The notes below the pieces were generated by a model that saw nothing but the letters and a program-made list of their open reading frames with translations, ran no database searches and had not been told where the DNA came from. This document shows, piece by piece, positions 20,033 through 49,362 of a stretch of DNA of 64,000 nt. The position numbers and the translations under genes were made by a program. The stretch spans positions 1 to 64,000 of the forward strand of contig MCFE01000358.1 of the NCBI GenBank assembly GCA_002104905.1. The letters run 5' to 3'. The DNA comes from Basidiobolus meristosporus CBS 931.73 (Eukaryota > Fungi > Basidiobolomycota). The number at the start of each line of letters is the position of its first letter. Positions within the stretch are counted from its first letter, which is position 1.

Positions 20033-22566
<2,534 letters not shown>

Positions 22567-25476: not shown

Positions 25477-26787
25477 ATGAGAATCAACAGTCCTTTGGGA
25501 CAAGTACTCCTCGTGGGTTTCGTCTGCTTCGCATGCCCCGGTATGTTCAACGTCATCAACGGTATGGGCGCCGGTGGTCAGATGGACGATAACACAGCCA
25601 AGAACGGAAATGTCGCCCTTTACTCTTGCTTTGCCGTGTTCGGATGCCTAGGTGGCGGTTTCTACAACATTCTCGGTGGTCGTCTTTGCTTGTGCCTCGG
25701 TGGTTTGACTTACGCTTTGTACTCTGGCTCGCTCCTCTACTACAACGAGACCAAGAAGCCCGCATTCGTGATCATTGCCAGTGCCATCCTTGGTGTTGGT
25801 GCTGGTATTCTGTGGACAGCTCAAGGCGTGGTGATGATGTCGTACCCTGCGGAAGATCAGAAGGGCCGCTGTGTCGGTCTGTTCTGGATTCTGTTCAACC
25901 TGGGTGGTGTGATGGGAGCCTTCATTCCATTCGGCCTCAACTTCCACTCTGACAAGGGAGCAGTCAGCAACAGCACCTACCTCGCCTTCCTCGTGATCAT
26001 GATTCTCGGTGCTCTCCTCGGACTCATTCTCTTGCCCCCTGGCAAGGTGATCCGTGATGATGGCAGCAGAGTAGTCGTGAAGAAGTTCACCAACATCGGC
26101 GGCGAGATCGTGGACATCCTCAAGCTCTTCACCAACAAGTACATGCTCCTGCTCACCCCGTTGTTCATCAGCTCCAACTGGTTCTACTCCTACCAGTTCG
26201 GCGCTGTGAACGGAGTGTTGTTCAACCTTCGCACCCGTTCCCTCAACAACGCCCTGTACTGGGGATCCCAGATGCTTGGTGCCTATGGCTTGGGAGCCTT
26301 CCTCGACAACCCTCGCTTCGGTCGTCGTGCCAGAGCTGTGTATGGACTGGCGATTGTTGGAGCGATCTTCTCGGCCACCTGGGCCGGAGGACTTGCCCTT
26401 CAGCTCCAATACACTCGTGAGGATCACCCCTCGAACATCGACTTCATCGACCACCCCAGCGAGTTCTGGCCCAAGTTCATCCTGTACATCTTCTATGGCA
26501 TGTGTGATGCCATGTTGCAAACCTATGCCTACTGGGTCATGGGAGCCTTGTCGAACGACTCATCAGTGCTTGCTCGCTATGCTGGCTACTACAAGGGCAT
26601 CCAATCAGCCGGAGCCGCCATTGCGTGGAGAATCGATGCGGTCGGCACTGCCTTCCTCACCCAGCTGATCATCAACTGGGGACTGTTCACTCTGTCTCTT
26701 CCATTCACCTACTTTGTAGCACGTGAAGTCAAGGAGACCTGTAACGATGGCGCCGAGGAGAAGGGTGAGGTAGCTGACAAAGAGTAA
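25477..26787 (+). CDS. NGT1: Array copy 1: UNC-93-like (DUF895) MFS transporter, NGT1/NOPE1-like putative GlcNAc transporter, 436 aa, intact
   Basis: CPGMFN, ALYSCFA, LWTAQG..MSYP, SNWFYSYQF, FNLRTRSLN, YIFYG..DA, GYYKGIQSAGAAIAWR match recalled Candida Ngt1 motifs; about 12 TM segments. Confidence 0.85.
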   Translation: MRINSPLGQVLLVGFVCFACPGMFNVINGMGAGGQMDDNTAKNGNVALYSCFAVFGCLGGGFYNILGGRLCLCLGGLTYALYSGSLLYYNETKKPAFVIIASAILGVGAGILWTAQGVVMMSYPAEDQKGRCVGLFWILFNLGGVMGAFIPFGLNFHSDKGAVSNSTYLAFLVIMILGALLGLILLPPGKVIRDDGSRVVVKKFTNIGGEIVDILKLFTNKYMLLLTPLFISSNWFYSYQFGAVNGVLFNLRTRSLNNALYWGSQMLGAYGLGAFLDNPRFGRRARAVYGLAIVGAIFSATWAGGLALQLQYTREDHPSNIDFIDHPSEFWPKFILYIFYGMCDAMLQTYAYWVMGALSNDSSVLARYAGYYKGIQSAGAAIAWRIDAVGTAFLTQLIINWGLFTLSLPFTYFVAREVKETCNDGAEEKGEVADKE

Positions 26788-27537
26788 ACTTATACCCGAA
26801 CACTGTACAGATCCTATTTTGCAAATATCACTACCTAGCATTACCACATTACAAACAATACGAAATTTTAAAATAAATGATCTCATAACCATCACTTTCG
26901 TTACCAGAACATTAGCCTATTTGCTGATGGGCTTAATCAACTGATTTTACCCTGCGTTTTACTTGTAAATCTTCACCATCTGCATTACCGTATTTCTGCT
27001 GTGTCTATGCTTTGGTGGACATTGGTGGGTGCTCTAGAGCTAGAGGGGAATAGTAAGCTGCCTTGGATGAAAAGTCCGCATGAATATCGCCTCATTTGGA
27101 GGGTGCTACCGTTTTTGGGAGATCCCTAGGGATTGAAAATCGCTTCGGATCCACACATCAATATGTATATGTCTATAATAGAGATTGACAGGTCATGGGT
27201 GATCAACGTCGCGTTTCGATGGAGCATGATCCCCCAATCCTGGAAAACCCATTTCACGTCATACAGAAGTCCGTGGCGCCCAATTTGCTACATGTTCTGG
27301 CGAACAGAACCACTCTGTGACATAGAAATATGGTCAAATTGTGGTGTTTTTAAAGGGGCAAAATGCTGGTCAACAGTAATCTACTTGTTAAAGGTAAAAG
27401 TGGTCGGAGTTCTGGGCCTGCTCCAAATGGGGGAGATAAATCAAACTCAGTGGTGGGTGATGTATATAAAATCAACATAAAGTCGTGCATGATAGCCAAC
27501 CTTTACTACTACCAATACTACTAGTTACAACTATACA

Positions 27538-28849
27538 ATGAGAATCAACAGTCCTTTGGGACAAGTACTCCTCGTGGGTTTCGTCTGCTTCGCATGCCCC
27601 GGCATGTTCAACGTCATCAACGGTATGGGCGCCGGTGGTCAGATGGACGATAACACAGCCAAGAACGGAAATGTCGCCCTTTACTCTTGCTTTGCCGTGT
27701 TCGGATGCCTAGGTGGTGGTTTCTACAACATTCTCGGTGGTCGTCTTTGCTTGTGCCTCGGTGGTTTGACTTACGCTTTGTACTCTGGCTCGCTCCTCTA
27801 CTACAATGAGACCAAGAAGCCGCATTCGTGATCATTGCCAGTGCCATCCTTGGTGTTGGTGCTGGTATTCTGTGGACAGCTCAAGGCGTGGTGATGATGT
27901 CGTATCCTGCGGAAGATCAGAAGGGCCGCTGTGTCGGTCTGTTCTGGATTCTGTTCAACCTTGGGTGGTGTGATGGGAGCCTTCATTCCATTCGGCCTCA
28001 ACTTCCACTCTGACAAGGGAGCCGTCAGCAACAGCACCTACCTCGCCTTCCTCGTGATCATGATTCTCGGCGCTCTCCTCGGACTCATTCTCTTGCCCCC
28101 TGGCAAGGTGATCCGCGATGATGGCAGCAGAGTAGTCGTGAAGAAGTTCACCAACATCGGCGGCGAGATCGTGGACATCCTCAAGCTCTTCACCAACAAG
28201 TACATGCTCCTGCTCACCCCGTTGTTCATCAGCTCCAACTGGTTCTACTCCATACCAGTTCGGCGCCGTGAACGGAGTGTTGTTCAACCTTCGCACCCGT
28301 TCCCTCAACAACGCCCTGTACTGGGGATCTCAGATGCTTGGTGCCTATGGCTTGGGAGCCTTCCTTGACAACCCTCGCTTCGGTCGTCGTGCCAGAGCTG
28401 TGTATGGACTGGCCATTGTTGGAGCGATCTTCTCGGCCACCTGGGCCGGAGGTCTTGCCCTTCAGCTCCAATACACTCGTGAGGATCACCCCTCGAACAT
28501 CGACTTCATCGACCACCCCAGCGAGTTCTGGCCCAAGTTCATCCTGTACATCTTCTATGGCATGTGTGATGCCATGTTGCAAACCTATGCCTACTGGGTC
28601 ATGGGAGCCTTGTCGAACGACTCGTCAGTGCTTGCTCGCTACGCTGGCTACTACAAGGGCATCCAATCAGCCGGAGCCGCCATTGCCTGGAGAATCGATG
28701 CTGTTGGCACTGCCTTCCTCACCCAGCTGATCATCAATTGGGGACTGTTCACTCTGTCTCTTCCATTCACCTACTTCGTAGCACGCGAGGTCAAGGAGAC
28801 CTGTAACGATGGGGCTGAAGAGAAGGGTGAAGTTGCTGACAAGGAGTGA
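27538..28849 (+). CDS. NGT1: Array copy 2, three 1-nt indels (~27820, ~27961, ~28250)
   Basis: Full-length match to copy 1 once the indels are corrected. Confidence 0.75.
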
Positions 28850-29588
28850 ACAGGATATAAATTCATACTTGGTTTTATTTTTAGCCATATCTGTAATTAC
28901 TTTAATCGTACTTAACTAAATGTAATAAAGCTAGCGTGTTACATCGAACCTAATTTCAATTCCAGTACCAACGTACTAATTTCTAGCAGACAAAACGCTT
29001 TCGGTGTCCCGGCTGATTACAGTGATTAGTGGTAGCGTAATGCTGGAGATAACCTTCTATAACAGATTGTTTGGTCAACATCAATTTCTTCGAAATCATT
29101 GGTGTATATTGTCGGAGCATGGCAAATACCTTTCACTGGAATCTAGCCGTAAAAACCATTTCAACTCCGCACGCCACTGGTCACCAAAATAGAATTCATC
29201 AAATCCAACATTACACCAACTTCAATTTAGCTATTTCTAAAGCAGAACATAACTATGACGCTCGGCACATCCCGTAACCCATCAAATGATCTCTGGAAAC
29301 ACAACAGTGGCTTGTAGTCTGGTGACACGAGAGGGACGTTCCACCATGAAGCTTATTCCGGACAATCACTTCGGTTCACCAAATCAAATAAGTACAGATT
29401 TCAACATCGAAATTGGAATGGTCCAATTACCAAAATACCTTGGTTACTAAGACTGCTTATGTACCTAATACTACAGTAGCTTATGTGGATTAGCCACTCG
29501 GTGCATCGACGGTCGCTACCAAGTATATAAGACTGGGAGTAATGATATGTGATTATCAAATATTCACTCTCAATTGATAAACTAAATA

Positions 29589-30901
29589 ATGAGAATTAAC
29601 AGTCCTTTGGGACAAGTACTCCTCGTGGGTTTTGTCTGCTTCGCATGCCCCGGCATGTTCAACGTCATCAACGGTATGGGCGCCGGTGGTCAGATGGACG
29701 ATAACACAGCCAAGAACGGAAATGTCGCCCTTTACTCTTGCTTTGCCGTATTCGGATGCCTAGGTGGTGGTTTCTACAACATTCTCGGTGGTCGTCTTTG
29801 CTTGTGCCTCGGTGGTTTGACTTACGCTTTGTACTCTGGCTCGCTCCTCTACTACAACGAGACCAAGAAGCCGCATTCGTGATCATTGCCAGTGCCATCC
29901 TTGGTGTTGGTGCTGGTATTCTGTGGACAGCTCAGGGTGTGGTGATGATGTCGTATCCCGCGGAAGATCAGAAGGGTCGCTGTGTCGGTCTGTTCTGGAT
30001 TCTGTTCAACCTGGGTGGTGTGATGGGAGCCTTCATTCCATTCGGCCTCAACTTCCACTCTGACAAGGGAGCCGTCAGCAACAGCACCTACCTCGCCTTC
30101 CTCGTGATCATGATTCTCGGCGCTCTCCTCGGACTCATTCTCCTTGCCCCCTGGCAAGGTGATCCGCGATGATGGCAGCAGAGTAGTCGTGAAGAAGTTC
30201 ACCAACATCGGTGGTGAGATCGTGGACATCCTCAAGCTCTTCACCAACAAGTACATGCTCCTGCTCACCCCGTTGTTCATTCAGCTCCAACTGGTTCTAC
30301 TCCTACCAGTTCGGCGCCGTGAACGGAGTGTTGTTCAACCTTCGCACCCGTTCCCTCAACAACGCCCTGTACTGGGGATCTCAGATGCTTGGTGCCTATG
30401 GCTTGGGAGCCTTCCTTGACAACCCTCGCTTCGGTCGTCGTGCCAGAGCTGTGTATGGACTGGCCATTGTTGGAGCGATCTTCTCGGCCACCTGGGCCGG
30501 AGGTCTTGCCCTTCAGCTCCAATACACTCGTGAGGATCACCCCTCGAACATCGACTTCATCGACCACCCCAGTGAGTTCTGGCCCAAGTTCATCCTGTAC
30601 ATCTTCTATGGCATGTGTGATGCCATGTTGCAGACCTATGCCTACTGGGTCATGGGAGCCTTGTCGAACGACTCATCAGTGCTTGCTCGCTATGCTGGCT
30701 ACTACAAGGGTATCCAATCAGCCGGAGCCGCCATTGCGTGGAGAATCGATGCTGTCGGCACTGCCTTCCTCACCCAGCTGATCATCAACTGGGGACTGTT
30801 CACTCTGTCTCTTCCATTCACCTACTTCGTAGCAGCGTGAGGTCAAGGAGACCTGTAACGATGGCGCTGAAGAGAAGGGTGAAGCAGCTGACAAGGAGTA
30901 A
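29589..30901 (+). CDS. NGT1: Array copy 3, four 1-nt indels (~29871, ~30143, ~30281, ~30833)
   Basis: Full-length match once the indels are corrected. Confidence 0.75.
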
Positions 30902-32376
30902 ATCCAAAATATATCGTTGTACAGAATTTCGTCTACATCTAACTCCATCCATTAAATTTAAAGCATGATTTAATCAACATATAATACGCAATGAATAAAC
31001 CACGTATCAATCATTTCAGTATTACGAATCCATGAGCTCACAATTCTGTAGTACAAAGTGGATATACCGAACCCTTAATTTTGAGCGGGGGTCAAATTCG
31101 GGCCATTTCTCACGTAAGATACATGTCTGATTTTACATTTCCCGAATCACTCTAGGTTGACCAGAATAATAAATGGTAAACAAAAATCGCCTAATCTTTC
31201 CTTTTGTAGCCATTCTCGCTTCGGAGTAAGTTTGTATTGATCATCCCAAAATTATAATATTGTATTTTAATGAAACTATATTGATGCCTAAAGTCCGTAG
31301 AATCCTCGGTCCAGTGTTATTATTAGTATTGAGACCTATGTTACACGGTGGCCCATAGCTTCCATATTTGCAGATCTTTTCGTCAAATAGAATACCAACT
31401 AGCATGAATTAATATGTTTAAATCATTAAATACTAAAACGGGTAAAATACCTAGTTATGAGTAAAATCCCTGCGGTGCGAATGTGGTTGAACTTGTTTCT
31501 TACAATTGGTTATCCAGGACTGCGTGCTTCATTCGACAATTCTCCGTCTACTGTATGTGGCTTTGAAATCAGCTCAATTTCCTAGGTAATTGGCGTCCTC
31601 AATAATGTCCTCCGTACAGGGCATAAAGTTGATTGGACGGTGTGGTTTGTATTGAAACTATTCATTTCAAATAACGATCAAATATGTAGCTAAAAGTTGT
31701 GATAATCAGAGTAGAAAGCCTGCAATTCGATCCTAAAATGAATGAGGTTCAATTCTGTTATTATTATGAACCCCATAAATCGCTGCGCGTTGTATAGTAT
31801 TGGACGAATGATCACAGAGTGTTGATTGGCTACGCGTAACGATCCTTCGCAATCCAGATTCGATATTTGCGAAATGAAATTGAGTTTCAGGATTTTCGGG
31901 TCTTACCCGAAAATGGAATGGGCTTCCATATCACTTGGTCCACACTGCTTTCCCTGATTAGGAAGCCTATACTAAATATGGCAATAATTTATGCTACAAA
32001 GATTGGAATTGAATAAGCGCGTAAACGAATGATTTTTGGACGGCTGGGCCAAGATGGACTTCAAGAAATATTTGCATGATGGAATCATCGAAAAAAGTGC
32101 AGGTCACACGATAATTTGAGGCGCACACATGAAAATCCGCTCGGGCGAATAGAGCATTGGGAACGGATGGGAATGTGTTCATATTGAAACAAATTAAAGT
32201 TGTAAAAGGTGTTAGTCTTAAAGGGTATATTCAATGAAGATGTAAATGGAGTTCTGGACCAATGCCAAGAACGATATTCACTTTAAACTCGGTGAATGAA
32301 TGTGTATATAAGATTAGCATCGAGGTTTCTGTTTCATCAAACACTAAATAATACTACAACTAGTTACAACTGTACA

Positions 32377-33687
32377 ATGAGAATCAACAGTCCTTTGGGA
32401 CAAGTACTCCTCGTGGGTTTTGTCTGCTTCGCATGCCCCGGCATGTTCAACGTCATCAACGGTATGGGCGCCGGTGGTCAGATGGATGATAACACAGCCA
32501 AGAACGGAAATGTCGCCCTTTACTCTTGCTTTGCCGTGTTCGGATGCCTAGGTGGCGGTTTCTACAACATTCTCGGTGGTCGTCTTTGCTTGTGCCTCGG
32601 TGGTTTGACTTACGCTTTGTACTCTGGCTCGCTCCTCTACTACAACGAGACCAAGAAGCCCGCATTCGTGATCATTGCCAGTGCCATCCTTGGTGTTGGT
32701 GCTGGTATTCTGTGGACAGCTCAGGGTGTGGTGATGATGTCGTATCCCGCGGAAGATCAGAAGGGTCGCTGTGTCGGTCTGTTCTGGATTCTGTTCAACC
32801 TGGGTGGTGTGATGGGAGCCTTCATTCCATTCGGCCTCAACTTCCACTCTGACAAGGGAGCCGTCAGCAACAGCACCTACCTCGCCTTCCTCGTGATCAT
32901 GATTCTCGGCGCTCTCCTCGGACTCATTCTCTTGCCCCCTGGCAAGGTGATCCGCGATGATGGCAGCAGAGTAGTCGTGAAGAAGTTCACCAACATCGGC
33001 GGTGAGATCGTGGACATCCTCAAGCTCTTCACCAACAAGTACATGCTCCTGCTCACCCCGTTGTTCATTAGCTCCAACTGGTTCTACTCCTACCAGTTTG
33101 GCGCCGTGAACGGAGTGTTGTTCAACCTTCGCACCCGTTCCCTCAACAACGCCCTTTACTGGGGATCTCAGATGCTTGGTGCCTACGGCTTGGGAGCCTT
33201 CCTCGACAACCCCCGCTTCGGTCGTCGTGCCAGAGCTGTGTATGGACTGGCGATTGTTGGAGCGATCTTCTCGGCCACCTGGGCCGGAGGTCTTGCCCTT
33301 CAGCTCCAATACACTCGTGAGGATCACCCCTCGAACATCGACTTCATCGACCACCCCAGCGAGTTCTGGCCCAAGTTCATCCTGTACATCTTCTATGGCA
33401 TGTGTGATGCCATGTTGCAAACCTATGCCTACTGGGTCATGGGAGCCTTGTCGAACGACTCATCAGTGCTTGCTCGCTATGCTGGCTACTACAAGGGCAT
33501 CCAATCAGCCGGAGCCGCCATTGCCTGGAGAATCGATGCTGTTGGCACTGCCTTCCTCACCCAGCTGATCATCAACTGGGGACTGTTCACTCTGTCTCTT
33601 CCATTCACCTACTTCGTAGCGCGTGAGGTCAAGGAGACCTGTAACGATGGCGCTGAAGAGAAGGGTGAGGTAGCAGACAAAGAGTAA
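32377..33687 (+). CDS. NGT1: Array copy 4, intact (protein identical to copy 1)
   Basis: 436-aa ORF from MRINSP; the upstream ATG at 32296 precedes the TATA box (32305). Confidence 0.85.
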   Translation: MRINSPLGQVLLVGFVCFACPGMFNVINGMGAGGQMDDNTAKNGNVALYSCFAVFGCLGGGFYNILGGRLCLCLGGLTYALYSGSLLYYNETKKPAFVIIASAILGVGAGILWTAQGVVMMSYPAEDQKGRCVGLFWILFNLGGVMGAFIPFGLNFHSDKGAVSNSTYLAFLVIMILGALLGLILLPPGKVIRDDGSRVVVKKFTNIGGEIVDILKLFTNKYMLLLTPLFISSNWFYSYQFGAVNGVLFNLRTRSLNNALYWGSQMLGAYGLGAFLDNPRFGRRARAVYGLAIVGAIFSATWAGGLALQLQYTREDHPSNIDFIDHPSEFWPKFILYIFYGMCDAMLQTYAYWVMGALSNDSSVLARYAGYYKGIQSAGAAIAWRIDAVGTAFLTQLIINWGLFTLSLPFTYFVAREVKETCNDGAEEKGEVADKE

Positions 33688-34444
33688 ATCAAAAATACTT
33701 CAATGTACAGAATTAGCTAATTATCAATACTTATCAATGCCACATTACTGATAGCACGAAATATTATAATAAATGATATTATAACCTCATCAACTCAACC
33801 TTGTGCCCTACAATTTTACTCCGTCTGCTAAAAGACGCAATCTGCTTAGACCCCCACAATGATCGCCTCCGTAATCAAATTTAGATGCGATCAACGGTGG
33901 TTTATCTTCATGGTCAAGTTTGTATCGAACATACAGATTTTCGATGTGGCGTTGATTCCATAGGCAACCATAAAAAAGTCCGCACAAATATCACTTGATT
34001 CGGCTGGACCTTCCTTATTTAGCCGCGATTTGGATTAACATCATTCTCGGATCCGTATATAGATAAATATACACAAAGCTACAATAAAAATAGGATCGGC
34101 CTAGAGTGATCAGCATAGTGGTTGTATTTAGAGTTTTCCTGTAACCACAGGAAATCCATCCCAGGCCATTTAGAAGTTCGTGGCGTGAAATTCGAAGTAT
34201 ACTCCAATAAATCGAGCCTAATGATTAATCGAAATTTATCTAAATCCTACGATCCCAAAATGGTAAGAAAGCGGGTCAACCTTAATATACTCGTTATAGG
34301 CACAATGAAGCGTCGTTCTAGGTCGGCTTCAAACATGGCGATCACTTCATGCGCAGTGATCGAAAACATATATAAGTTCTACCTAGAGGTCTTAGTCACA
34401 TTCATATCTAAAATACTACAAGAACAACTAGTTAAAACATTATA

Positions 34445-35755
34445 ATGAGAATCAACAGTCCTTTGGGACAAGTACTCCTCGTGGGTTTTGTCTGCTTCGC
34501 ATGCCCCGGCATGTTCAACGTCATCAACGGTATGGGCGCCGGTGGACAGATGGACGATAACACAGCCAAGAACGGAAATGTCGCCCTTTACTCTTGCTTT
34601 GCCGTGTTCGGATGCCTAGGTGGTGGTTTCTACAACATTCTTGGTGGTCGTCTTTGCTTGTGCCTCGGTGGTTTGACTTACGCTTTGTACTCTGGCTCGC
34701 TCCTCTACTACAACGAGACCAAGAAGCCGCATTCGTGATCATTGCCAGTGCCATCCTTGGTGTTGGTGCTGGTATTCTGTGGACAGCTCAGGGTGTGGTG
34801 ATGATGTCGTATCCCGCGGAAGATCAGAAGGGTCGCTGTGTCGGTCTGTTCTGGATTCTGTTCAACCTGGGTGGTGTGATGGGAGCCTTCATTCCATTCG
34901 GCCTCAACTTCCACTCTGACAAGGGAGCCGTCAGCAACAGCACCTACCTCGCCTTCCTCGTGATCATGATTCTCGGTGCTCTCCTCGGACTCATTCTCCT
35001 GCCTCCTGGCAAGGTGATCCGTGATGATGGCAGCAGAGTAGTCGTGAAGAAGTTCACCAACATCGGCGGTGAGATCGTGGACATCCTCAAGCTCTTCACC
35101 AACAAGTACATGCTCCTGCTCACCCCATTGTTCATCAGCTCCAACTGGTTCTACTCATACCAGTTCGGCGCTGTGAACGGAGTGTTGTTCAACCTTCGCA
35201 CCCGTTCCCTCAACAACGCCCTCTACTGGGGATCTCAGATGCTTGGTGCCTACGGCTTGGGAGCCTTCCTCGACAACCCTCGCTTCGGTCGTCGTGCCAG
35301 AGCTGTGTATGGACTGGCCATTGTTGGAGCGATCTTCTCGGCCACCTGGGCCGGAGGACTTGCCCTTCAGCTCCAATACACTCGTGAGGATCACCCCTCG
35401 AACATCGACTTCATCGACCACCCCAGCGAGTTCTGGCCCAAGTTCATCCTGTACATCTTCTATGGCATGTGTGATGCCATGTTGCAGACCTATGCTTACT
35501 GGGTCATGGGAGCCTTGTCGAACGACTCGTCAGTGCTTGCTCGCTATGCTGGCTACTACAAGGGCATCCAATCAGCCGGAGCTGCCATTGCGTGGAGAAT
35601 CGATGCGGTCGGCACTGCCTTCCTTACCCAGCTGATCATCAACTGGGGGACTGTTCACTCTGTCTCTTCCATTCACCTACTTTGTAGCGCGCGAGGTCAA
35701 GGAGACCTGCAACGATGGCGCCGAAGAGAAGGGCGAGGTAGCAGACAAAGAGTAA
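34445..35755 (+). CDS. NGT1: Array copy 5, two 1-nt indels (~34728, ~35648)
   Basis: Full-length match once the indels are corrected. Confidence 0.75.
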
Positions 35756-37039
35756 ACCCAAACCGTAGCATTGTACAGAATTCAATCAATATTCCGCACT
35801 AAATATCATTACTATAAGCGCATCATAGCATTATCTTTGAGTTCAAATTTAATATTGAATAAATCACCCTGTAAACGTACTTAGTTCAATGTTGATACGG
35901 ATTTTTCTCCCCAAAGTACACATGCAACCCGCTACTAGTTCTCAAGTGTGTTGGCGACAATTATATTACTCTCGCATGTCAGTCTTTCTGAGCACATCAT
36001 TCCTTATATTATCACAAGAAGTAGGGTTCATGTCTAATTTGCAGTGAGTTCCGGTAAGTGGGTTACAATCATGAAAGGGTTGGTAACATGGGTAATAGTT
36101 TGGGCTGTATAGCGGCCAGCGGCGTTTAATTTATGATCGGTTTAAGTTTGCAGATCGTTGTGATAAGTCTCTTGATGCCTAACATGTTGGTGATGTACAG
36201 GAAGTTGAGAATATCTAGTAGTGAATATGATTGCTTTACTACTATTGATTGTTCTATTGTTACGAATTCACAATCGGCGGCTGAAGAAGGCAAGTATAGC
36301 CATTCGTCTTCATGGGTAGTAGATGTGCCATCATTATTATTCAGCATTAATCGATATCATAGTCTTCTGTGTTTAATTGGCAGCGCTTCCGGTACTGGAA
36401 GTCTGTTGTGTTATGCTTGGCCTTTACTTCGTCGGAGGTTTACTTTATAACTTACTAATGCAACAAACAACAGCGTGATGAGCTGTGGATACTCTAGTGT
36501 TCTAACATAACAAACACATCGTCTGCGGCTTCTACACTGCCATGCTAACTATCAATACCTGAATAAGCATACGAGTTTTGTACACAATTTCCAATACTCT
36601 CGCTGACTTGACTGCTTATTACAACGATTAACAGGTGGCTCCAGCAGCCAATTCCCCCGAAACGGGAGCCGTTAGTACCATCCTACACGTTCAGCCGATC
36701 TTTAGTTGAGGACTCTTCCCTACAGCTTTACCGATAACTACCGTCGTAACTTTCAGGTAGAAGGAAGCTTATACCCGTTCCATCAATAAGGAAGAAGCAT
36801 GCAATGACCGAGCGTAGTTTCAGGACAAATCCGTCAACCGTGTTTTTACACTACAATAGTCACCCATTGACATATCTATGCTACTCGTACATAGTGAGTA
36901 AATACTACTGCTTACACGACCATCGCACTTACTCCGCATAGATTTGCTGAAGAGAAAGTTGGGCGGTTCTCGGTTCTGATCATCTGAGGCAAAAATTTAT
37001 CGAATGTGGGGTGTATTTAGATGTAGAAAAAGTAACTAT

Positions 37040-37524
37040 CGAAACAGAAACTGAAGGCAAACACTAACATTGAAATGGTCATCTAATCATTCCTAATTTG
37101 GGGTTGCCTGTGCCATTCTTGGAGCTGAGATTGGATACTATTCCAATTAGAGCGTAGCATATATCTTAATGTAGAGATCAATACCAACCAATCGTGATCC
37201 CAAGGACCATGAGTATTTGGTTAATGGAATACTCATGGAAAAGCTAGCTCAGATCTCCGTGCAATTAGTGGCGTCGGTGATTCGGTGCTTTCTAGGACAT
37301 TGAACATGCTCATGCAATTTAGCTTTGTGGTGGTAAAAAACCCAGCTTGACAGTAATCTAATCATTATGGGACCAGGCGGAGTTCTGGACTATTTCTGAA
37401 TTCAGTAATCGCCTCAAACTCCATAGTTCCGCAAGTATAAAGATCTGCAGTGAGGTAATCATAAGGCACAACCCTTAATACCACTCTTACTCTTACTCTT
37501 ACTACAACTAGTTACAACTTTACA
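37040..37524 (+). promoter_or_regulatory. Shared ~460-480 bp promoter block of copies 6-9 (also ~39683-40141, ~42685-43137, ~45170-45652)
   Basis: Clearly alignable in four spacers; contains an 11-bp inverted repeat, GGAGTTCTGG and a TATA box. Confidence 0.85.
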
Positions 37525-38835
37525 ATGAGAATCAACAGTCCTCTGGGACAAGTACTCCTGGTGGGTTTTGTCTGCTTCGCATGTCCCGGCATGTTCAACG
37601 TCATCAACGGTATGGGTGCCGGTGGTCAGATGGATGATAACACAGCCAAGAACGGAAATGTCGCCCTTTACTCTTGCTTTGCCGTGTTCGGATGCCTAGG
37701 TGGTGGTTTCTACAACATTCTTGGTGGTCGTCTTTGCTTGTGCCTCGGTGGTTTGACTTACGCTTTGTACTCTGGCTCGCTCCTCTACTACAACGAGACC
37801 AAGAAGCCCGCATTCGTGATCATTGCCAGTGCCATCCTTGGTGTTGGTGCTGGTATTCTGTGGACAGCTCAGGGTGTGGTGATGATGTCGTATCCCGCGG
37901 AAGATCAGAAGGGTCGCTGTGTCGGTCTGTTCTGGATTCTGTTCAACCTGGGTGGTGTGATGGGAGCCTTCATTCCATTCGGCCTCAACTTCCACTCTGA
38001 CAAGGGAGCCGTCAGCAACAGCACCTACCTCGCCTTCCTCGTGATCATGATTCTCGGTGCTCTCCTCGGACTCATTCTCTTGCCCCCTGGCAAGGTGATC
38101 CGCGATGATGGCAGCAGAGTAGTCGTGAAGAAGTTCACCAACATCGGCGGCGAGATCGTGGACATCCTCAAGCTCTTCACCAACAAGTACATGCTCCTGC
38201 TCACCCCATTGTTCATCAGCTCCAACTGGTTCTACTCCTACCAGTTCGGCGCCGTGAACGGAGTGTTGTTCAACCTTCGCACCCGTTCCCTCAACAACGC
38301 CCTCTACTGGGGATCTCAGATGCTTGGTGCCTACGGCTTGGGTGCCTTCCTCGACAACCCTCGCTTCGGTCGTCGCGCCAGAGCTGTGTATGGACTGGCG
38401 ATTGTTGGAGCGATCTTCTCGGCCACCTGGGCCGGAGGACTTGCCCTTCAGCTCCAATACACTCGTGAGGATCACCCCTCGAACATCGACTTCATCGACC
38501 ACCCCAGCGAGTTCTGGCCCAAGTTCATCCTGTACATCTTCTATGGCATGTGTGATGCCATGTTGCAAACCTATGCCTACTGGGTCATGGGAGCCTTGTC
38601 GAACGACTCGTCAGTGCTTGCTCGCTATGCTGGCTACTACAAGGGCATCCAATCAGCCGGAGCTGCCATTGCCTGGAGAATCGATGCTGTTGGCACTGCC
38701 TTCCTTACCCAGCTGATCATCAACTGGGGACTGTTCACTCTGTCTCTTCCATTCACCTACTTTGTAGCGCGCGAGGTCAAGGAGACCTGTAACGATGGCT
38801 CCGAGGAGAAGGGCGAGGTAGCTGACAAAGAGTAG
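37525..38835 (+). CDS. NGT1: Array copy 6, intact (one A>S near the C-terminus)
   Basis: 436-aa ORF. Confidence 0.85.
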   Translation: MRINSPLGQVLLVGFVCFACPGMFNVINGMGAGGQMDDNTAKNGNVALYSCFAVFGCLGGGFYNILGGRLCLCLGGLTYALYSGSLLYYNETKKPAFVIIASAILGVGAGILWTAQGVVMMSYPAEDQKGRCVGLFWILFNLGGVMGAFIPFGLNFHSDKGAVSNSTYLAFLVIMILGALLGLILLPPGKVIRDDGSRVVVKKFTNIGGEIVDILKLFTNKYMLLLTPLFISSNWFYSYQFGAVNGVLFNLRTRSLNNALYWGSQMLGAYGLGAFLDNPRFGRRARAVYGLAIVGAIFSATWAGGLALQLQYTREDHPSNIDFIDHPSEFWPKFILYIFYGMCDAMLQTYAYWVMGALSNDSSVLARYAGYYKGIQSAGAAIAWRIDAVGTAFLTQLIINWGLFTLSLPFTYFVAREVKETCNDGSEEKGEVADKE

Positions 38836-40141: not shown

Positions 40142-41453
40142 ATGAGAATCAACAGTCCTCTGGGACAAGTACTCCTGGTGGGTTTTGTCTGCTTCGCATG
40201 TCCCGGCATGTTCAACGTCATCAACGGTATGGGCGCCGGTGGTCAGATGGATGATAACACAGCCAAGAACGGAAATGTCGCCCTTTACTCTTGCTTTGCC
40301 GTGTTCGGATGCCTAGGTGGCGGTTTCTACAACATTCTCGGTGGTCGTCTTTGCTTGTGCCTCGGTGGTTTGACTTACGCTTTGTACTCTGGCTCGCTCC
40401 TCTACTACAACGAGACCAAGAAGCCGGCATTCGTGATCATTGCCAGTGCCATCCTTGGTGTTGGTGCTGGTATTCTGTGGACAGCTCAGGGTGTGGTGAT
40501 GATGTCGTATCCCGCGGAAGATCAGAAGGGTCGCTGTGTCGGTCTGTTCTGGATTCTGTTCAACCTGGGTGGTGTGATGGGAGCCTTCATTCCATTCGGC
40601 CTCAACTTCCACTCTGACAAGGGCGCCGTCAGCAACAGCACCTACCTCGCCTTCCTCGTGATCATGATTCTCGGTGCTCTCCTCGGACTCATTCTCTTGC
40701 CCCCTGGCAAGGTGATCCGCGATGATGGCAGCAGAGTAGTCGTGAAGAAGTTCACCAACATCGGTGGTGAGATCGTGGACATCCTCAAGCTCTTCACCAA
40801 CAAGTACATGCTCCTGCTCACCCCATTGTTCATCAGCTCCAACTGGTTCTACTCCTATCCAGTTCGGTGCCGTGAACGGAGTGTTGTTCAACCTTCGCAC
40901 CCGTTCCCTCAACAACGCCCTCTACTGGGGATCTCAGATGCTTGGTGCCTATGGCTTGGGAGCCTTCCTCGACAACCCTCGCTTCGGTCGTCGTGCCAGA
41001 GCTGTGTATGGACTGGCGATTGTTGGAGCGATCTTCTCGGCCACCTGGGCCGGAGGACTTGCCCTTCAGCTCCAATACACTCGTGAGGATCACCCCTCGA
41101 ACATCGACTTCATCGACCACCCCAGCGAGTTCTGGCCTAAGTTCATCCTGTACATCTTCTATGGCATGTGTGATGCCATGTTGCAAACCTATGCCTACTG
41201 GGTCATGGGAGCCTTGTCGAACGACTCATCAGTGCTTGCTCGCTACGCTGGCTACTACAAGGGCATTCAATCAGCCGGAGCTGCCATTGCGTGGAGAATC
41301 GATGCTGTCGGCACTGCCTTCCTCACCCAGCTGATCATCAATTGGGGACTGTTCACTCTGTCTCTTCCATTCACCTACTTCGTAGCACGCGAGGTCAAGG
41401 AGACCTGTAACGATGGCGCTGAAGAGAAGGGCGAGGTAGCTGACAAAGAGTAG
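40142..41453 (+). CDS. NGT1: Array copy 7, one 1-nt insertion (~40858)
   Basis: Full-length match once the indel is corrected. Confidence 0.8.
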
Positions 41454-41929
41454 ATGGAATGCATGATATTGTATAGAATTCAATCACTTTAAACATCATC
41501 ATAAGAGCATTTTTGAAACACATTATATGAATAAAGAATACATATCGAAATTTGCTAGCTTCATGTCGATACTGAATTACTCTTCATCTTTACCTAACCT
41601 AACAGGCTCTACAAAACTCCAGCTGAAGCGAATAGAATCCACGTATTGTGTACTTACGTCTATTTTTATCTTGTCTTTCCTTTGGCTATTTATCGAAGGA
41701 ATCTGATTTAATCGATTGATTTCGTATCCGATATGTCTGGTCTTCATGGAAATTAGGTGTAGGATATTGGTAGCTAATGTTTAGTGCGTTGTGGTATGCA
41801 ACACTCTGCTAAAGAGCGATATGATCGGCTCGAACAAGACTCGTACCGCACAGCTGATTGTGGCACCATACAACACCTCACATAAGTGCTAATTTTCAGT
41901 AAAAGCAGGTTGAAAAGGCCATAGTTTAC

Positions 41930-42280
41930 TCCTTATATAGCTATTGGGATAAGTATTATGATGACCCACGCATAGTAGTAAGTGAAAATGCCAGCCTTTT
42001 TTTCGGAAGATAGCACTGCAGAGAACCGAATCGGTGGCCTTCACTCATGCTTTGCCTCATTCACAGGTTTAGGCTGTGATTTCTACAACGTGCTAGATGG
42101 TTTCCTGAGTCACGATATTGTTAGGGTCAGGGTAGCCCTAACCCGTGTTCATCCCCTGAATTGACTATGACCTCTGTAGTGCCATGATGTATTTCTATGC
42201 CTGGTTATTTATTCCAGTCTTGTTCATTATACTAACTACCACAAGGACACCCTATCGGTAGGTGCGGTCATTGCATAAAT
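41930..42280 (+). pseudogene. Heavily decayed 5' fragment of an older array paralogue inside spacer 7-8
   Basis: DSTAENRIGGLHSCFASFTGLGCDFYNVLDG aligns with DNTAKNGNVALYSCFAVFGCLGGGFYNILGG; ttgggataagtatt matches ttgggacaagtact. Confidence 0.7.
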
Positions 42281-43137
42281 AATCAATTTCCTTATTACCG
42301 ACTTTCTCACCCTGCTGACCATCAGCTGAGGACGCTTTACCCTATCACTTCTGAACATCTATTTCGTAGCATGAGAGATCTCGGAAATCTGTAATTAGTC
42401 TACCAACGGGTACAGGATGGGTATTAACAGTACAGAAGCCGAGACCTAACCAATATACCCCATTTATTGCACTTCCATCATCTATTATCGCTATCTCAAT
42501 GAGAATAAACACAACCATGATTTACTCCACATAGACTTACGAAATAGTGTAATAGTCTGTTAATAATTCGGATCCGCCTTGGTAAAATTTTCTCGAACGT
42601 GGAGTATGTTCCATAAACATAAAGTGCTAAATCGTAAAGAATTTCATGAGATCGAAATAGAATTCAAGGGCAAGCAATAGCATCAGAATGGTCATCCAAT
42701 CATTCCTAATTTGGGATTCCCAGTGCCCTTGATGAAACTTGAATTGAACACGGTTCCAATTAGATCGTAGCATATATCCTAACGAAGAGATCAATACCAA
42801 CCATTTATGATCCCAAGGACCATGAGTATTTGGTTAATGGAATACTCATGGAAAAGCCTGCTCAGATCTCTGTGCAATTAGTGGCGTCGGTGATCTGGTG
42901 CTTTCTAGGACATTGAACATGCTCATGCAATTTAGCTTTGTGATGGTAAAAAACCCAGCATGACAGCAATCTAATCATTATGGGACCAGGCGGAGTTCTG
43001 GACTATTTCTGAATTCAGTAATCGCCTCAAACTCCATAGTTCCGCAAGTATATAAAGATCTGCAGTGAGGTAATCATAAGGCACAACCCTTAATACTACT
43101 CTTACTTACTCTTACTACAACTAGTTACAACTTTACA

Positions 43138-44448
43138 ATGAGAATCAACAGTCCTCTGGGACAAGTACTCCTGGTGGGTTTTGTCTGCTTCGCATGCCCC
43201 GGCATGTTCAACGTCATCAACGGTATGGGCGCCGGTGGTCAGATGGATGATAACACAGCCAAGAACGGAAATGTCGCCCTTTACTCTTGCTTTGCCGTAT
43301 TCGGATGCCTAGGTGGTGGTTTCTACAACATTCTCGGTGGTCGTCTTTGCTTGTGCCTCGGTGGTTTGACTTACGCTTTGTACTCTGGCTCGCTCCTCTA
43401 CTACAACGAGACCAAGAAGCCCGCATTCGTGATCATTGCCAGTGCCATCCTTGGTGTTGGTGCCGGTATTCTGTGGACAGCTCAGGGTGTGGTGATGATG
43501 TCGTATCCCGCGGAAGATCAGAAGGGTCGCTGTGTCGGTCTGTTCTGGATTCTGTTCAACCTGGGTGGTGTGATGGGAGCCTTCATTCCATTCGGCCTCA
43601 ACTTCCACTCTGACAAGGGAGCCGTCAGCAACAGCACCTACCTCGCCTTCCTCGTGATCATGATTCTCGGTGCTCTCCTCGGACTCATTCTCTTGCCCCC
43701 TGGCAAGGTGATCCGTGATGATGGCAGCAGAGTAGTCGTGAAGAAGTTCACCAACATCGGCGGTGAGATCGTGGACATCCTCAAGCTCTTCACCAACAAG
43801 TACATGCTCCTGCTCACCCCGTTGTTCATCAGCTCCAACTGGTTCTACTCCTACCAGTTCGGCGCCGTGAACGGAGTGTTGTTCAACCTTCGCACCCGTT
43901 CCCTCAACAACGCCTTGTACTGGGGATCTCAGATGCTTGGTGCCTACGGCTTGGGAGCCTTCCTTGATAACCCTCGCTTCGGTCGTCGCGCCAGAGCTGT
44001 GTATGGACTGGCGATTGTTGGAGCAATTTTCTCTGCCACCTGGGCCGGAGGACTTGCCCTTCAGCTCCAATACACTCGTGAGGATCACCCCTCGAACATC
44101 GACTTCATCGACCACCCCAGCGAGTTCTGGCCCAAGTTCATCCTGTACATCTTCTATGGCATGTGTGATGCCATGTTGCAAACCTATGCCTACTGGGTCA
44201 TGGGAGCCTTGTCGAACGACTCGTCAGTGCTTGCTCGCTATGCTGGCTACTACAAGGGCATCCAATCAGCCGGAGCCGCCATTGCCTGGAGAATCGATGC
44301 TGTCGGCACTGCCTTCCTTACCCAGCTGATCATCAACTGGGGACTGTTCACTCTGTCCCTTCCATTCACCTACTTCGTAGCGCGCGAGGTCAAGGAGACC
44401 TGTAACGATGGCGCTGAAGAGAAGGGTGAGGCAGCTGACAAAGAGTAA
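43138..44448 (+). CDS. NGT1: Array copy 8, intact (V>A near the C-terminus)
   Basis: 436-aa ORF. Confidence 0.85.
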   Translation: MRINSPLGQVLLVGFVCFACPGMFNVINGMGAGGQMDDNTAKNGNVALYSCFAVFGCLGGGFYNILGGRLCLCLGGLTYALYSGSLLYYNETKKPAFVIIASAILGVGAGILWTAQGVVMMSYPAEDQKGRCVGLFWILFNLGGVMGAFIPFGLNFHSDKGAVSNSTYLAFLVIMILGALLGLILLPPGKVIRDDGSRVVVKKFTNIGGEIVDILKLFTNKYMLLLTPLFISSNWFYSYQFGAVNGVLFNLRTRSLNNALYWGSQMLGAYGLGAFLDNPRFGRRARAVYGLAIVGAIFSATWAGGLALQLQYTREDHPSNIDFIDHPSEFWPKFILYIFYGMCDAMLQTYAYWVMGALSNDSSVLARYAGYYKGIQSAGAAIAWRIDAVGTAFLTQLIINWGLFTLSLPFTYFVAREVKETCNDGAEEKGEAADKE

Positions 44449-45652: not shown

Positions 45653-46963
45653 ATGAGAATCAACAGTCCTTTGGGACAAGTACTCCTGGTGGGTTTTGTC
45701 TGCTTCGCATGTCCCGGCATGTTCAACGTCATCAACGGTATGGGCGCCGGTGGTCAGATGGACGATAACACAGCCAAGAACGGAAATGTCGCCCTTTACT
45801 CTTGCTTTGCCGTGTTCGGATGCCTAGGTGGTGGTTTCTACAACATTCTCGGTGGTCGTCTTTGCTTGTGCCTCGGTGGTCTGACTTACGCTTTGTACTC
45901 TGGCTCGCTCCTCTACTACAACGAGACCAAGAAGCCCGCATTCGTGATCATTGCCAGTGCCATCCTTGGTGTTGGTGCTGGTATTCTGTGGACAGCTCAG
46001 GGTGTGGTGATGATGTCGTATCCTGCGGAAGATCAGAAGGGTCGCTGTGTCGGTCTGTTCTGGATTCTGTTCAACCTGGGTGGTGTGATGGGAGCCTTCA
46101 TTCCATTCGGCCTCAACTTCCACTCTGACAAGGGAGCCGTCAGCAACAGCACCTACCTCGCCTTCCTCGTGATCATGATTCTCGGCGCTCTCCTCGGACT
46201 CATTCTCTTGCCCCCTGGCAAGGTGATCCGTGATGATGGCAGCAGAGTAGTCGTGAAGAAGTTCACCAACATCGGCGGCGAGATCGTGGACATCCTCAAG
46301 CTCTTCACCAACAAGTACATGCTCCTGCTCACCCCGTTGTTCATCAGTTCCAACTGGTTCTACTCCTACCAGTTCGGCGCCGTGAACGGAGTGTTGTTCA
46401 ACCTTCGCACCCGTTCCCTCAACAACGCCCTTTACTGGGGATCTCAGATGCTTGGTGCCTACGGCTTAGGAGCCTTCCTTGATAACCCTCGCTTCGGTCG
46501 TCGCGCCAGAGCTGTGTATGGACTGGCCATTGTTGGAGCGATCTTCTCAGCCACCTGGGCCGGAGGTCTTGCCCTTCAGCTCCAATACACTCGTGAGGAT
46601 CACCCCTCGAACATCGACTTCATCGACCACCCCAGCGAGTTCTGGCCCAAGTTCATCCTGTACATCTTCTATGGCATGTGTGATGCCATGTTGCAAACCT
46701 ATGCCTACTGGGTCATGGGAGCCTTGTCGAACGACTCATCAGTGCTTGCTCGCTACGCTGGCTACTACAAGGGCATCCAATCAGCCGGAGCCGCCATTGC
46801 CTGGAGAATCGATGCTGTCGGCACTGCCTTCCTCACCCAGCTGATCATCAACTGGGGACTGTTCACTCTGTCTCTTCCATTCACCTACTTTGTAGCGCGC
46901 GAGGTCAAGGAGACCTGTAACGATGGCGCTGAAGAGAAGGGTGAGGTAACAGACAAAGAGTAA
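45653..46963 (+). CDS. NGT1: Array copy 9, intact (A>T near the C-terminus)
   Basis: 436-aa ORF. Confidence 0.85.
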   Translation: MRINSPLGQVLLVGFVCFACPGMFNVINGMGAGGQMDDNTAKNGNVALYSCFAVFGCLGGGFYNILGGRLCLCLGGLTYALYSGSLLYYNETKKPAFVIIASAILGVGAGILWTAQGVVMMSYPAEDQKGRCVGLFWILFNLGGVMGAFIPFGLNFHSDKGAVSNSTYLAFLVIMILGALLGLILLPPGKVIRDDGSRVVVKKFTNIGGEIVDILKLFTNKYMLLLTPLFISSNWFYSYQFGAVNGVLFNLRTRSLNNALYWGSQMLGAYGLGAFLDNPRFGRRARAVYGLAIVGAIFSATWAGGLALQLQYTREDHPSNIDFIDHPSEFWPKFILYIFYGMCDAMLQTYAYWVMGALSNDSSVLARYAGYYKGIQSAGAAIAWRIDAVGTAFLTQLIINWGLFTLSLPFTYFVAREVKETCNDGAEEKGEVTDKE

Positions 46964-48051
46964 GTCCAAACCGACGGTCAATATTTCTATCAGCTACTTC
47001 ACTACCATCCCTCATAATAGTATTAACAATAAAATTAATTCATTCTAATCATACCATATATTTACTCGCTTTATTGATTTGAAAAATATGATCTTCATCC
47101 TGTTTTTCGTGAGGCGTTTTCCATGTATATTTCGGAGTTCCCCCATGCTTTGCAAATATTCATTTGCCTGTGATTCGTTCACCAAATGTGATGGGTGCCT
47201 TTAATGCTACTAATATACACCGTTTTTCTCGGCGATTACTCATCAAAAACCACAATATAGGAGCATTTATTCTGGCTGAGTTACGTGTTTAGGTACCGGA
47301 GTCCAAAGGAAGTACTATACTTGTATCTCGTCATATCAAATTTACACATTTGCACTATTGAGTACCACAAAGTAACATATAGATGCTGATCAATTGGGGG
47401 ACGGGTAAAGTACTGCTTATGGCTGATGGGCACCAATACTACATAGTGGATTCAGCTGGGACGACCCTTCAGCCACCAACATTTCTTATAGCCCATTTCC
47501 CATACCCCGAAGGCCAAAAGCACAAGAATGGTCTGGTCTGTGGGGACGGTTTGTTCGTAATCAACAACAAGGTTTTCACTTACCAAAATTGTCAACGGAC
47601 CTAGATGGCAGCATATTGTGGAGATTGGCCTGGTCACCAATTTATCAAGTCGTACTCTCCGCAAACTGCCTGCCGAAATGGGAAGGTATACAATGACTAA
47701 TGAGAATCTTACGAGTTTTCTCACTCTCCAATCTGTGTAGATATAGTGACCTATCTCCGGATTCGGATGGACCAATGGGTAGCATTCCAATATTTACTCA
47801 AACAATAAAGTTAGAGTTCTCTAGTGTAACAGTCGAATTCCATCTCCATTTTAGTATAAATTACTCGCTGGTTTGGCAATTTCGGTAACCTTAAAGCCTC
47901 CCGTAGCGCAACTGGGTATAGTAAGCAATGGTAGCACAAGTGCTTATATGAAGTCGGTTGTATAGTAACTACAAGCTCGGGGTGTGGGTGTATATAAAGC
48001 CTTCAACCTGCTGGGTATAATCATAAGTAATTTGCTACTTTCTACTCTACA

Positions 48052-49362
48052 ATGAGAATCAACAGTCCTTTGGGACAAGTACTCCTGGTGGGTTTTGTCT
48101 GCTTCGCATGCCCCGGCATGTTCAACGTCATCAACGGTATGGGTGCCGGTGGTCAAATGGACGATAACACAGCCAAGAACGGAAATGTCGCCCTTTATTC
48201 TTGCTTTGCCGTGTTCGGATGCCTAGGTGGTGGTTTCTACAACATTCTCGGTGGTCGTCTTTGCTTGTGCCTCGGTGGTTTGACTTACGCTTTGTACTCT
48301 GGCTCGCTCCTCTACTACAACGAGACCAAGAAGCCGGCATTCGTGATCATTGCCAGTGCCATCCTTGGTGTTGGTGCCGGTATTCTGTGGACAGCCCAGG
48401 GTGTGGTGATGATGTCGTATCCCGCGGAAGATCAGAAGGGTCGCTGTGTCGGTCTGTTCTGGATTCTGTTCAACCTGGGTGGTGTGATGGGAGCCTTCAT
48501 TCCATTCGGCCTCAACTTCCACTCTGACAAGGGAGCCGTCAGCAACAGCACCTACCTCGCCTTCCTCGTGATCATGATTCTCGGCGCTCTCCTCGGACTC
48601 ATTCTCTTGCCTCCTGGCAAGGTGATCCGCGACGATGGCAGCAGAGTAGTCGTGAAGAAGTTCACCAACATCGGTGGTGAGATCGTGGACATCCTCAAGC
48701 TCTTCACCAACAAGTACATGCTCCTGCTCACCCCGTTGTTCATCAGCTCCAACTGGTTCTACTCCTACCAGTTCGGCGCCGTGAACGGAGTGTTGTTCAA
48801 CCTTCGCACCCGTTCCCTCAACAACGCCCTGTACTGGGGATCTCAGATGCTTGGTGCCTACGGCTTGGGAGCCTTCCTCGACAACCCTCGCTTCGGTCGT
48901 CGTGCCAGAGCTGTGTATGGACTGGCGATTGTTGGAGTGATCTTCTCAGCCACCTGGGCCGGAGGACTTGCCCTTCAGCTCCAATACACTCGTGAGGATC
49001 ACCCCTCGAACATCGACTTCATCGACCACCCCAGCGAGTTCTGGCCCAAGTTCATCCTGTACATCTTCTATGGCATGTGTGATGCCATGTTGCAAACCTA
49101 TGCCTACTGGGTCATGGGAGCCTTGTCGAACGACTCATCAGTGCTTGCTCGCTACGCTGGCTACTACAAGGGCATCCAATCAGCCGGAGCTGCCATTGCC
49201 TGGAGAATCGATGCTGTCGGCACTGCCTTCCTCACCCAGCTGATCATCAACTGGGGACTGTTCACTCTGTCTCTTCCATTCACCTACTTCGTAGCACGTG
49301 AGGTCAAGGAGACCTGTAACGATGGCGCTGAAGAGAAGGGCGAGGTGGCTGACAAGGAGTAA
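48052..49362 (+). CDS. NGT1: Array copy 10, intact (A>V in IVGVIFS)
   Basis: 436-aa ORF. Confidence 0.85.
   Translation: MRINSPLGQVLLVGFVCFACPGMFNVINGMGAGGQMDDNTAKNGNVALYSCFAVFGCLGGGFYNILGGRLCLCLGGLTYALYSGSLLYYNETKKPAFVIIASAILGVGAGILWTAQGVVMMSYPAEDQKGRCVGLFWILFNLGGVMGAFIPFGLNFHSDKGAVSNSTYLAFLVIMILGALLGLILLPPGKVIRDDGSRVVVKKFTNIGGEIVDILKLFTNKYMLLLTPLFISSNWFYSYQFGAVNGVLFNLRTRSLNNALYWGSQMLGAYGLGAFLDNPRFGRRARAVYGLAIVGVIFSATWAGGLALQLQYTREDHPSNIDFIDHPSEFWPKFILYIFYGMCDAMLQTYAYWVMGALSNDSSVLARYAGYYKGIQSAGAAIAWRIDAVGTAFLTQLIINWGLFTLSLPFTYFVAREVKETCNDGAEEKGEVADKE

Follow-up and report, generated by a model that had tools for sequence, protein, structure and literature searches.

Ten UNC-93-type transporter genes in an old tandem array of Basidiobolus meristosporus, probably kept to one protein by gene conversion within the coding sequence

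Introduction

The genes described here can reasonably be placed in TCDB transporter family 2.A.1.58, which was founded on NGT1 of Candida albicans (PMC2636803) and includes UNC93A, MFSD11, and UNC93B1 (PMC5627054). Ngt1 and the plant protein NOPE1 are both documented transporters of N-acetylglucosamine (GlcNAc), as an earlier sequence-only reading of this DNA had noted, and NOPE1 rescues the C. albicans ngt1 mutant (PMC7151181, PMC7558947); Ngt1 itself is reported to have diverged a great deal from the plant form (PMC7151181). The same reading called these relatives low-copy, and ascomycetes do carry one or two copies, with NGT1 lying near GlcNAc catabolic genes in Histoplasma and unlinked in C. 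albicans (PMC3778022). In this study, we analyzed 64,000 nucleotides (nt) of Basidiobolus meristosporus CBS 931.73 (assembly GCA_002104905.1, contig MCFE01000358.1, positions 1 to 64,000, forward strand; hereafter the window), in which ten full-length copies of a gene for a transporter of the UNC-93 type stand in tandem between 25477 and 49362.

The second point of comparison is concerted evolution, as described by models of the Ohta and Nagylaki type and as seen in conversion limited to the coding sequence (CDS) of yeast duplicates. Classical models of this kind predict that gene copies come to resemble alleles when conversion plays the part of drift. Our analyses suggested, with a probability of about 0.8, that the array is an old one, in which a single UNC-93-type major facilitator superfamily (MFS) protein has been kept by interlocus gene conversion confined to the CDS together with strong purifying selection. 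The mechanism is of an ordinary and already known kind, concerted evolution by CDS-limited gene conversion, and the notable feature is the CDS-bounded homogenization, not the number of copies.

Results

Composition of the array

BLASTN with the first unit recovered ten full-length units on the plus strand (25477-49362), in agreement with the ten head-to-tail copies counted before, and pairwise nucleotide identity among them was 97.0-98.4%. Every unit is colinear with the protein, so that none contains an intron, which also had been read from the letters. Six units, the number given previously, are uninterrupted open reading frames (ORFs) of 436 codons encoding an UNC-93/MFS transporter, namely c1 (25477-26787), c4 (32377-33687), c6 (37525-38835), c8 (43138-44448), c9 (45653-46963), and c10 (48052-49362), the last unit of the array. 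The near-identity claimed for their proteins was confirmed as well: c1 and c4 encode the consensus, and each of the others departs from it by one residue (A426S in c6, V432A in c8, A433T in c9, and A296V in c10). For c4, the ORF listed from 32296 is extended upstream in frame.

The four remaining units are also full-length and on the plus strand, and are interrupted by ten insertions or deletions (indels) of 1 nt only, most of them in or beside short single-base runs. Unit c2 (27538-28849) has three, a deletion after 27819 and insertions at 27961 and 28252, and otherwise no defect; c3 (29589-30901) has four, a deletion after 29870 and insertions at 30142, 30280, and 30834; c5 (34445-35755) has a deletion after 34726 and an insertion at 35645, its frame being shifted only between them; and c7 (40142-41453) has a single insertion at 40858. 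No stop-creating substitution and no larger indel was found in these four units, and when they are read in the original frame they give the consensus protein.

The array is larger than the sequence-only reading had given, since a degenerate copy and two decayed relics, all on the plus strand, had been missed. At the 5' edge stands the degenerate copy, c0 (24060-24851), which has lost codons 54-222 in frame, contains an internal frame-shifted stretch, and is 85.5% identical to c1 over nt 1-159 and 95.7% over nt 667-1293. One relic (36515-36814), which lies within the long c5-c6 spacer, retains 33% amino acid identity to residues 337-426. The other (42006-42395), within the likewise long c7-c8 spacer, matches residues 37-70, 332-352, and 363-423 at 48-53% amino acid identity. 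The presence of two decayed relics and a degenerate copy indicates that the array is old.

Flanking sequences and regulatory signals

Outside the CDS the units have little in common. Spacers range from 625 to 1769 nt, and comparison of spacer against spacer by BLAST gave almost no matches apart from a 25-nt leader before some of the start codons and a block upstream of c6-c9. Side by side, similarity starts at the ATG or no more than about 25 nt from it and is lost immediately past the stop codon, the BLAST match being CDS positions 1 to 1311. Outside the CDS only short islands are in common: the TATA box, a motif in the leader, and, within the 3' untranslated region (UTR), TTGTACAGAAT. As had been noted, a TATA[AT]A box stands 61 to 89 nt before the ATG of every unit (at -67 in c1). 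The AATAAA signal, earlier ascribed to most copies, is in fact present in every unit, approximately 85-110 nt past the stop codon. Judged from such sequence signals, all copies look expressible.

The upstream region of about 500 nt that is common to c6-c9 was defined at c6 (37040-37524, plus strand), and its counterparts lie directly upstream of 40142, 43138, and 45653; identity is 90-96.5% over approximately 380-530 nt. Upstream of the TATA box this block carries GGAGTTCTGG and AAACTC[CG][AG]TA. Two promoter motifs, GGAGTTCTGG and AAACTCNGTG, are given here as common to six copies. Exact GGAGTTCTGG occurs in c2, c4, and c6-c9, 54-57 nt before the TATA box, and is not found in c1, c3, c5, and c10. 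The element AAACTC[ACG]GT[AG] starts 37 nt after it in c2, c4, c7, and c9, taking the form AAACTC[AG]GTG in c2 and c4, and AAACTCCATA stands in its place in c6 and c8. These conserved elements, all upstream of the TATA box, are located at 27406-27445, 32248-32287, and 37379-37420 and at the matching places before c7-c9. GGAGTTCTGG and AAACTC[ACG]GT[AG] are candidate binding sites of a shared regulator. Most promoters are unalignable yet related, which points to a regulation that would be common to most copies, with some divergence.

Substitution pattern and selection

Among 87 variable ungapped sites, 79 fall at third, 6 at first, and 2 at second codon positions. Within the array, the Nei-Gojobori method gave a mean synonymous divergence (dS) of 0.101 (0.069-0.140) and a non-synonymous divergence (dN) of 0.0011, a ratio of 0.011. 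Two paralogs further along the contig, d1 and d2, lie at a dS of 0.61 from the array, and other clusters of Basidiobolus at 1.1-2.4 with dN/dS of 0.05-0.15, so the low dS within the array does not reflect a constraint on silent sites. In a table of the McDonald-Kreitman type, changes within the array numbered 82 synonymous and 4 non-synonymous, and differences fixed relative to d1/d2 numbered 90 and 55, respectively (Fisher p = 2e-9). The array protein is thus under strong purifying selection. Changes within the array comprised 70 transitions and 14 transversions, most of them between C and T.

The genes had been called strongly codon-biased. The bias itself is evident; its strength is better described as moderate to strong, the effective number of codons (ENC) being 42-43 and the GC content at third positions 0.69, compared with an ENC of 55-61 in the neighboring genes. 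A bias of this size would fit high expression.

Exchange among copies

In the four-gamete test, all four combinations were present in 636 of 1081 pairs (59%) of biallelic informative sites, and linkage was nearly gone even for close sites. Copies c2 and c3 had the longest stretch of variants in common, 23 sites, which exceeded what was seen in shuffles (p = 0.04). The folded frequency spectrum (37/18/12/15/2) fitted the expectation of the neutral coalescent (33/18.6/14.1/12.4/5.9; chi-square p = 0.41). Seen in this way, the array is comparable to a set of ten alleles drawn from a population with recombination.

Frameshifted copies and gene models

The four interrupted units show no sign of neutral decay: 14 of the 15 private substitutions in them are at third positions, for which a binomial estimate under neutral decay is approximately 2e-6. 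To check the assembly, which we take to be a Joint Genome Institute assembly of the PacBio era, Illumina-type DNA contigs of two runs from one sample were compared with 29800-35799 (6,000 letters). As these runs may derive from the very sample that was assembled, what the comparison checks is the assembly, not the biology. At 30280 in c3, the inserted T is missing from the sole Illumina contig that covers the site; among the six coding indels in this interval, this is the one for which the contigs were informative, and they contradicted it. At 31054/5, in a unique spacer, all short-read contigs of both runs are one base shorter than the assembly, likely an indel error of the assembly. The frameshifts in c2, c3, c5, and c7 are probably uncorrected 1-nt consensus errors of long reads, at least some of them and perhaps all.

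Two observations weigh against this explanation. The same CCC-to-CC deletion is found in c2, c3, and c5 (after 27819, 29870, and 34726), a site on which the contigs are neutral; it looks more like a real variant spread by conversion than like three errors made independently, and such a variant could be very young. In addition, contigs drop rare variants, so that the absence of the T at 30280 falls short of proof. The public gene models P0005, P0010, P0135, and P0138 bridge the indels with invented introns or run on in the wrong frame, giving artifacts at 27538-30901, 34445-35802, and 40142-41453, and the annotated proteins of 322-436 amino acids are partly artefactual. The four annotated models of pseudogene-like appearance thus probably stem from 1-nt errors of the assembly.

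Copy number and short-read support

All units have unique spacers that anchor them, and short-read contigs cross the unique spacer-to-CDS junctions at 31092-32402 and 33643-34473. The depth of coding words was 400-830, against 85-190 for spacer words, which is consistent with the many copies claimed for the array. In total, 61-64% of sampled 31-mers were present in the Illumina contigs.

Two side observations were made on the same data. The word depth of two unique spacers differed approximately twofold in both runs (173-189 at 31000-32400 and 83-93 at 33800-34400), and several single-base differences were seen in just one of the two runs of the same sample. The depth gap and the run-specific differences may reflect haplotypes, polyploidy, or structural heterozygosity in the array.

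Related clusters in Basidiobolus

The paralogs d1 and d2 are located outside the window at 70621-71922 and 74121-75422 of MCFE01000358.1 (L006:6501-7802, 10001-11302), past copia-like elements. They encode identical proteins of 433 amino acids, and share 89% protein and 86% DNA identity with the array; over 1669 nt, of which approximately 290 nt lie upstream, the two are 98.9% identical. Copia-type copies at 80-89% identity flank the pair (L006:183-4800, 15528-20846), and ribosomal protein genes (S11, S8e) and a pterin-4a dehydratase gene follow.

Clusters of two and four copies were found on other B. meristosporus contigs (MCFE01000247.1, MCFE01000373.1), and a syntenic cluster of three was found in B. 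ranarum (JASJQH010007001.1). These clusters are similar to the array in lacking introns, in amino acid identity (79-89%), and in the CDS-bounded near-identity of neighbors. Neighboring copies, whether tandem or inverted, are 98.6-99.3% identical over stretches that start 0-42 nt from the ATG and end between approximately 80 nt before and 10 nt past the stop codon. They differ from the array in size and orientation, with two to four copies, some of them inverted, against ten live copies on one strand in the window. A second large array was considered for P0008, described as having nine member sequences, and was rejected, as there is a single copy at that locus.

A protein tree built by a quick method placed the Basidiobolus members in one expansion of 25 sequences, with paralogs grouping within species. 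In this tree the array forms a separate clade on a stem of 0.2, into which none of the sampled B. ranarum sequences falls.

In both Basidiobolus species, a cluster of UNC93-like genes adjoins an oxidase gene of the FAD_binding_4/BBE type (L002:1993-3485, L003:7540-8096). The family of this oxidase includes chito-oligosaccharide oxidases, and the adjoining gene is a possible link to sugar metabolism.

Protein family and fold

The sequence-only reading had placed the protein in the NGT1/NOPE1 family, a placement that holds at the level of UNC-93/NAG-T: the Pfam family PF05978 (UNC-93) was matched at 63.5 bits (cutoff 22.9). A further match to MFS_1 at 39.4 bits (cutoff 33.4) assigned the protein to the MFS. 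An AlphaFold2 model built with 40 homologs had a predicted local distance difference test score of 88.9 and a predicted template modeling (TM) score of 0.87, showed the twelve long helices of an MFS carrier, and all its fold matches were MFS proteins. The best reviewed relatives were the Arabidopsis UNC93-like proteins 1 and 2 (Q56WD3, Q8LG53), at 50% full-length identity and TM scores of 0.90-0.91, followed by the S. pombe UNC93-like protein SPAC922.05c at 42% and, far behind, UNC93A and MFSD11 at 17-20%. Plant homologs named UNC93-like protein 1/2, including grass proteins, were 50-55% identical and carried the same UNC-93 and MFS_1 signature. The array protein had no sequence match among solved structures, and searches of the AlphaFold database clusters and the ESM Atlas added no functional names. 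C. albicans Ngt1 was not among the 30 best fold matches in Swiss-Prot, a library in which its presence is not known. NGT1, UNC93A, and MFSD11 all belong to 2.A.1.58, and the latter two are fold matches here, so the placement in this family of twelve-helix MFS carriers is reasonable.

Neighboring sequences

Upstream of the array, the window contains genes unrelated to it, for a tricalbin-like protein (six C2 domains, one SMP domain) and for a CEP120-like protein (8611-12315, 14699-16978). Right after the array, a block of low GC content (53195-60026) holds the remains of a copia-type retrotransposon (gag, RVT_2). Spacer ORFs of at least 70 amino acids had no Pfam match. At 907-2276 there is a long imperfect tandem repeat with periods of 84, 93, 177, and 258 nt and 67-91% matches, overlapped by ORFs on both strands, which is probably a repetitive coding region.

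Discussion

The flanks are unalignable while the CDS stands at a dS of 0.10, all four gametes are present, the frequency spectrum is that of a coalescent, relics lie among the live units, and paralogs group by species, as is characteristic of concerted evolution. The array is like the classical systems in its mosaic variants, in its coalescent-like spectrum, and in the decay of diverged members, and the likeness of its copies exceeds what the flanks and relics would suggest. Nothing sets it apart in kind. Its own particulars are that the units are ten protein-coding genes with independent promoters, that dN/dS is as low as 0.01, and that several clusters in two species show the same pattern.

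The process may be pictured as follows. Selection on the protein would keep the coding sequences alike enough to recombine, and flanks would gather substitutions and indels and so escape exchange, with the result that conversion tracts would end at the edges of the genes. Conversion would then act on the ten copies as drift does on ten alleles; units that left the exchange have decayed to relics, and the survivors have stayed near-identical. With a separate TATA box, short leader, and AATAAA in every unit and the two further motifs in six, the array would be expected to supply one plasma-membrane transporter at high dosage.

Two points tell against conversion as the source of the mosaic pattern. 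A test of the pairwise homoplasy index type for distance-dependent incompatibility was not significant (p = 0.11), ten sequences giving it little power, and in so small a set some of the homoplasy may come from recurrent C/T changes.

As for the cargo, homology suggests that GlcNAc or a related amino sugar would be most likely. The plant UNC93-like proteins 1/2, which share half of their residues, the fold, and the domain signature with the array protein, presumably form the clade of rice and maize NOPE1. In the literature searched, no link was found between NOPE1 and the UNC93-like name or locus identifiers. For plants, no homogenized array like that of Basidiobolus is described in the literature searched. 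In contrast to Ngt1 of ascomycetes, with its one or two copies and its catabolic linkage in Histoplasma, the array has at least ten copies and no catabolic neighbor. B. meristosporus lives in the dung and the gut of animals that eat insects, which makes a chitin-rich niche plausible.

That the protein carries something else, whether another sugar, amino sugar, or metabolite, or acts mainly as an exporter, stands at about even odds. Members of the family with unrelated roles, such as UNC93B1 and unc-93, are known (PMC5627054). NOPE1 has been proposed to act in export, of GlcNAc-like compounds, or in signaling in roots, and its physiological substrate has been called unresolved (PMC8644718, PMC13596872). 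Basidiobolus has at least 25 diverged members, and 55 fixed amino acid differences separate the array even from its nearest paralogs. GlcNAc as cargo is weakened further by S. pombe, which is reported neither to catabolize nor to respond to GlcNAc (PMC7151181) yet has the homolog of 42% identity, and by the window itself, which holds no GlcNAc catabolic gene and shows no clustering with HXK1, DAC1, and NAG1, a linkage that is not universal and that C. albicans NGT1 itself lacks. On the other side, both characterized relatives, Ngt1 and NOPE1, move GlcNAc (PMC7151181, PMC7558947), the array protein and the plant clade share about 50% of their residues, and nagA-like deacetylases are reported to be abundant in Basidiobolales (PMC8778642).

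A more far-reaching proposal is that CDS-limited conversion, possibly aided by complementary DNA (cDNA) copied from a highly expressed mRNA, serves as a device that provides one protein from many promoters: at least ten genes for the same protein, with promoters free to diverge, for an uptake of amino sugars (GlcNAc) that would be of very high capacity and condition-specific in a chitin-rich niche of gut and dung. The CDS-limited rule in this proposal appears to run family-wide in at least two Basidiobolus species. We consider the device as a whole unlikely.

Among the alternatives to conversion, the one that survives best, though improbable, is that the copies are ancient and independent, their synonymous sites frozen by codon selection except for about 90 "toggle" sites that are free and saturated. 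It would accommodate the clear codon bias (ENC 43), the excess of transitions (70 against 14 transversions, mostly C/T), and the fact that incompatibility does not drop with proximity. Silent sites do change, however: 90 others are fixed relative to d1/d2, and paralogs reach a dS of 0.6-2.4. The spectrum, with 44% singletons, fits the coalescent and not an equilibrium of toggling, and by our estimate a bias of ENC 43 would be too weak for a tenfold reduction of dS.

Slightly less credible is homogenization templated by RNA, in which cDNA made from an abundant mRNA by the reverse transcriptase of a retrotransposon recombines into the paralogs. Such a process would account for the absence of introns, in the array as in all Basidiobolus family members examined, and for limits at the CDS, which are seen in tandem and inverted pairs alike; Copia-type gag and reverse transcriptase sequences flank the array, and the codon bias suggests high expression. 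Nevertheless, the identity among c6-c9 reaches 400-500 nt upstream of the ATG, past the TATA box and outside any transcript, whereas the 3' UTRs up to AATAAA are transcribed but have not been homogenized. Conversion between DNA copies, limited by the divergence of the flanks, gives the same boundaries.

A recent burst of tandem duplication, by which the copies would be alike because they are young, with no gene conversion, is harder still to maintain. The CDS identity is uniform, at 97-98%, and the 400-500 nt upstream of c6-c9 have diverged about as much as the silent sites of these units, both of which a burst would predict. Unequal crossing-over duplicates a unit in full, but six upstream regions out of ten and every downstream region are unalignable, and the CDSs of copies with unalignable flanks are as similar as those of c6-c9. 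The four-gamete failure in 59% of informative pairs and the strongly decayed relics inside the array also speak against youth.

Least probable of all is that long-read assembly over near-identical repeats created the copy number or the mosaic, a view that can draw on the 1-nt indel errors in 29800-35799 and on the recovery of just 61-64% of sampled 31-mers but is opposed by the unique spacer anchoring each unit, by the Illumina contigs traversing the spacer-to-CDS junctions (31092-32402, 33643-34473), and by coding words approximately 4-9 times deeper than spacer words.

Conversion confined to the CDS and strong purifying selection, acting on an old array, thus remain our explanation of the locus. 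So understood, the array is an unusually clean natural case of concerted evolution of protein-coding genes, with ten live copies, unrelated flanks, and dead relics within 25 kb, in which the variation among copies is quantitatively like a neutral sample of alleles and amino acid changes are almost absent. It also represents a lineage-specific amplification, in a chitin-associated fungus, of the transporter family that holds the only known eukaryotic GlcNAc transporters. If GlcNAc were indeed the cargo, no larger dosage expansion of a transporter of this sort would be known.

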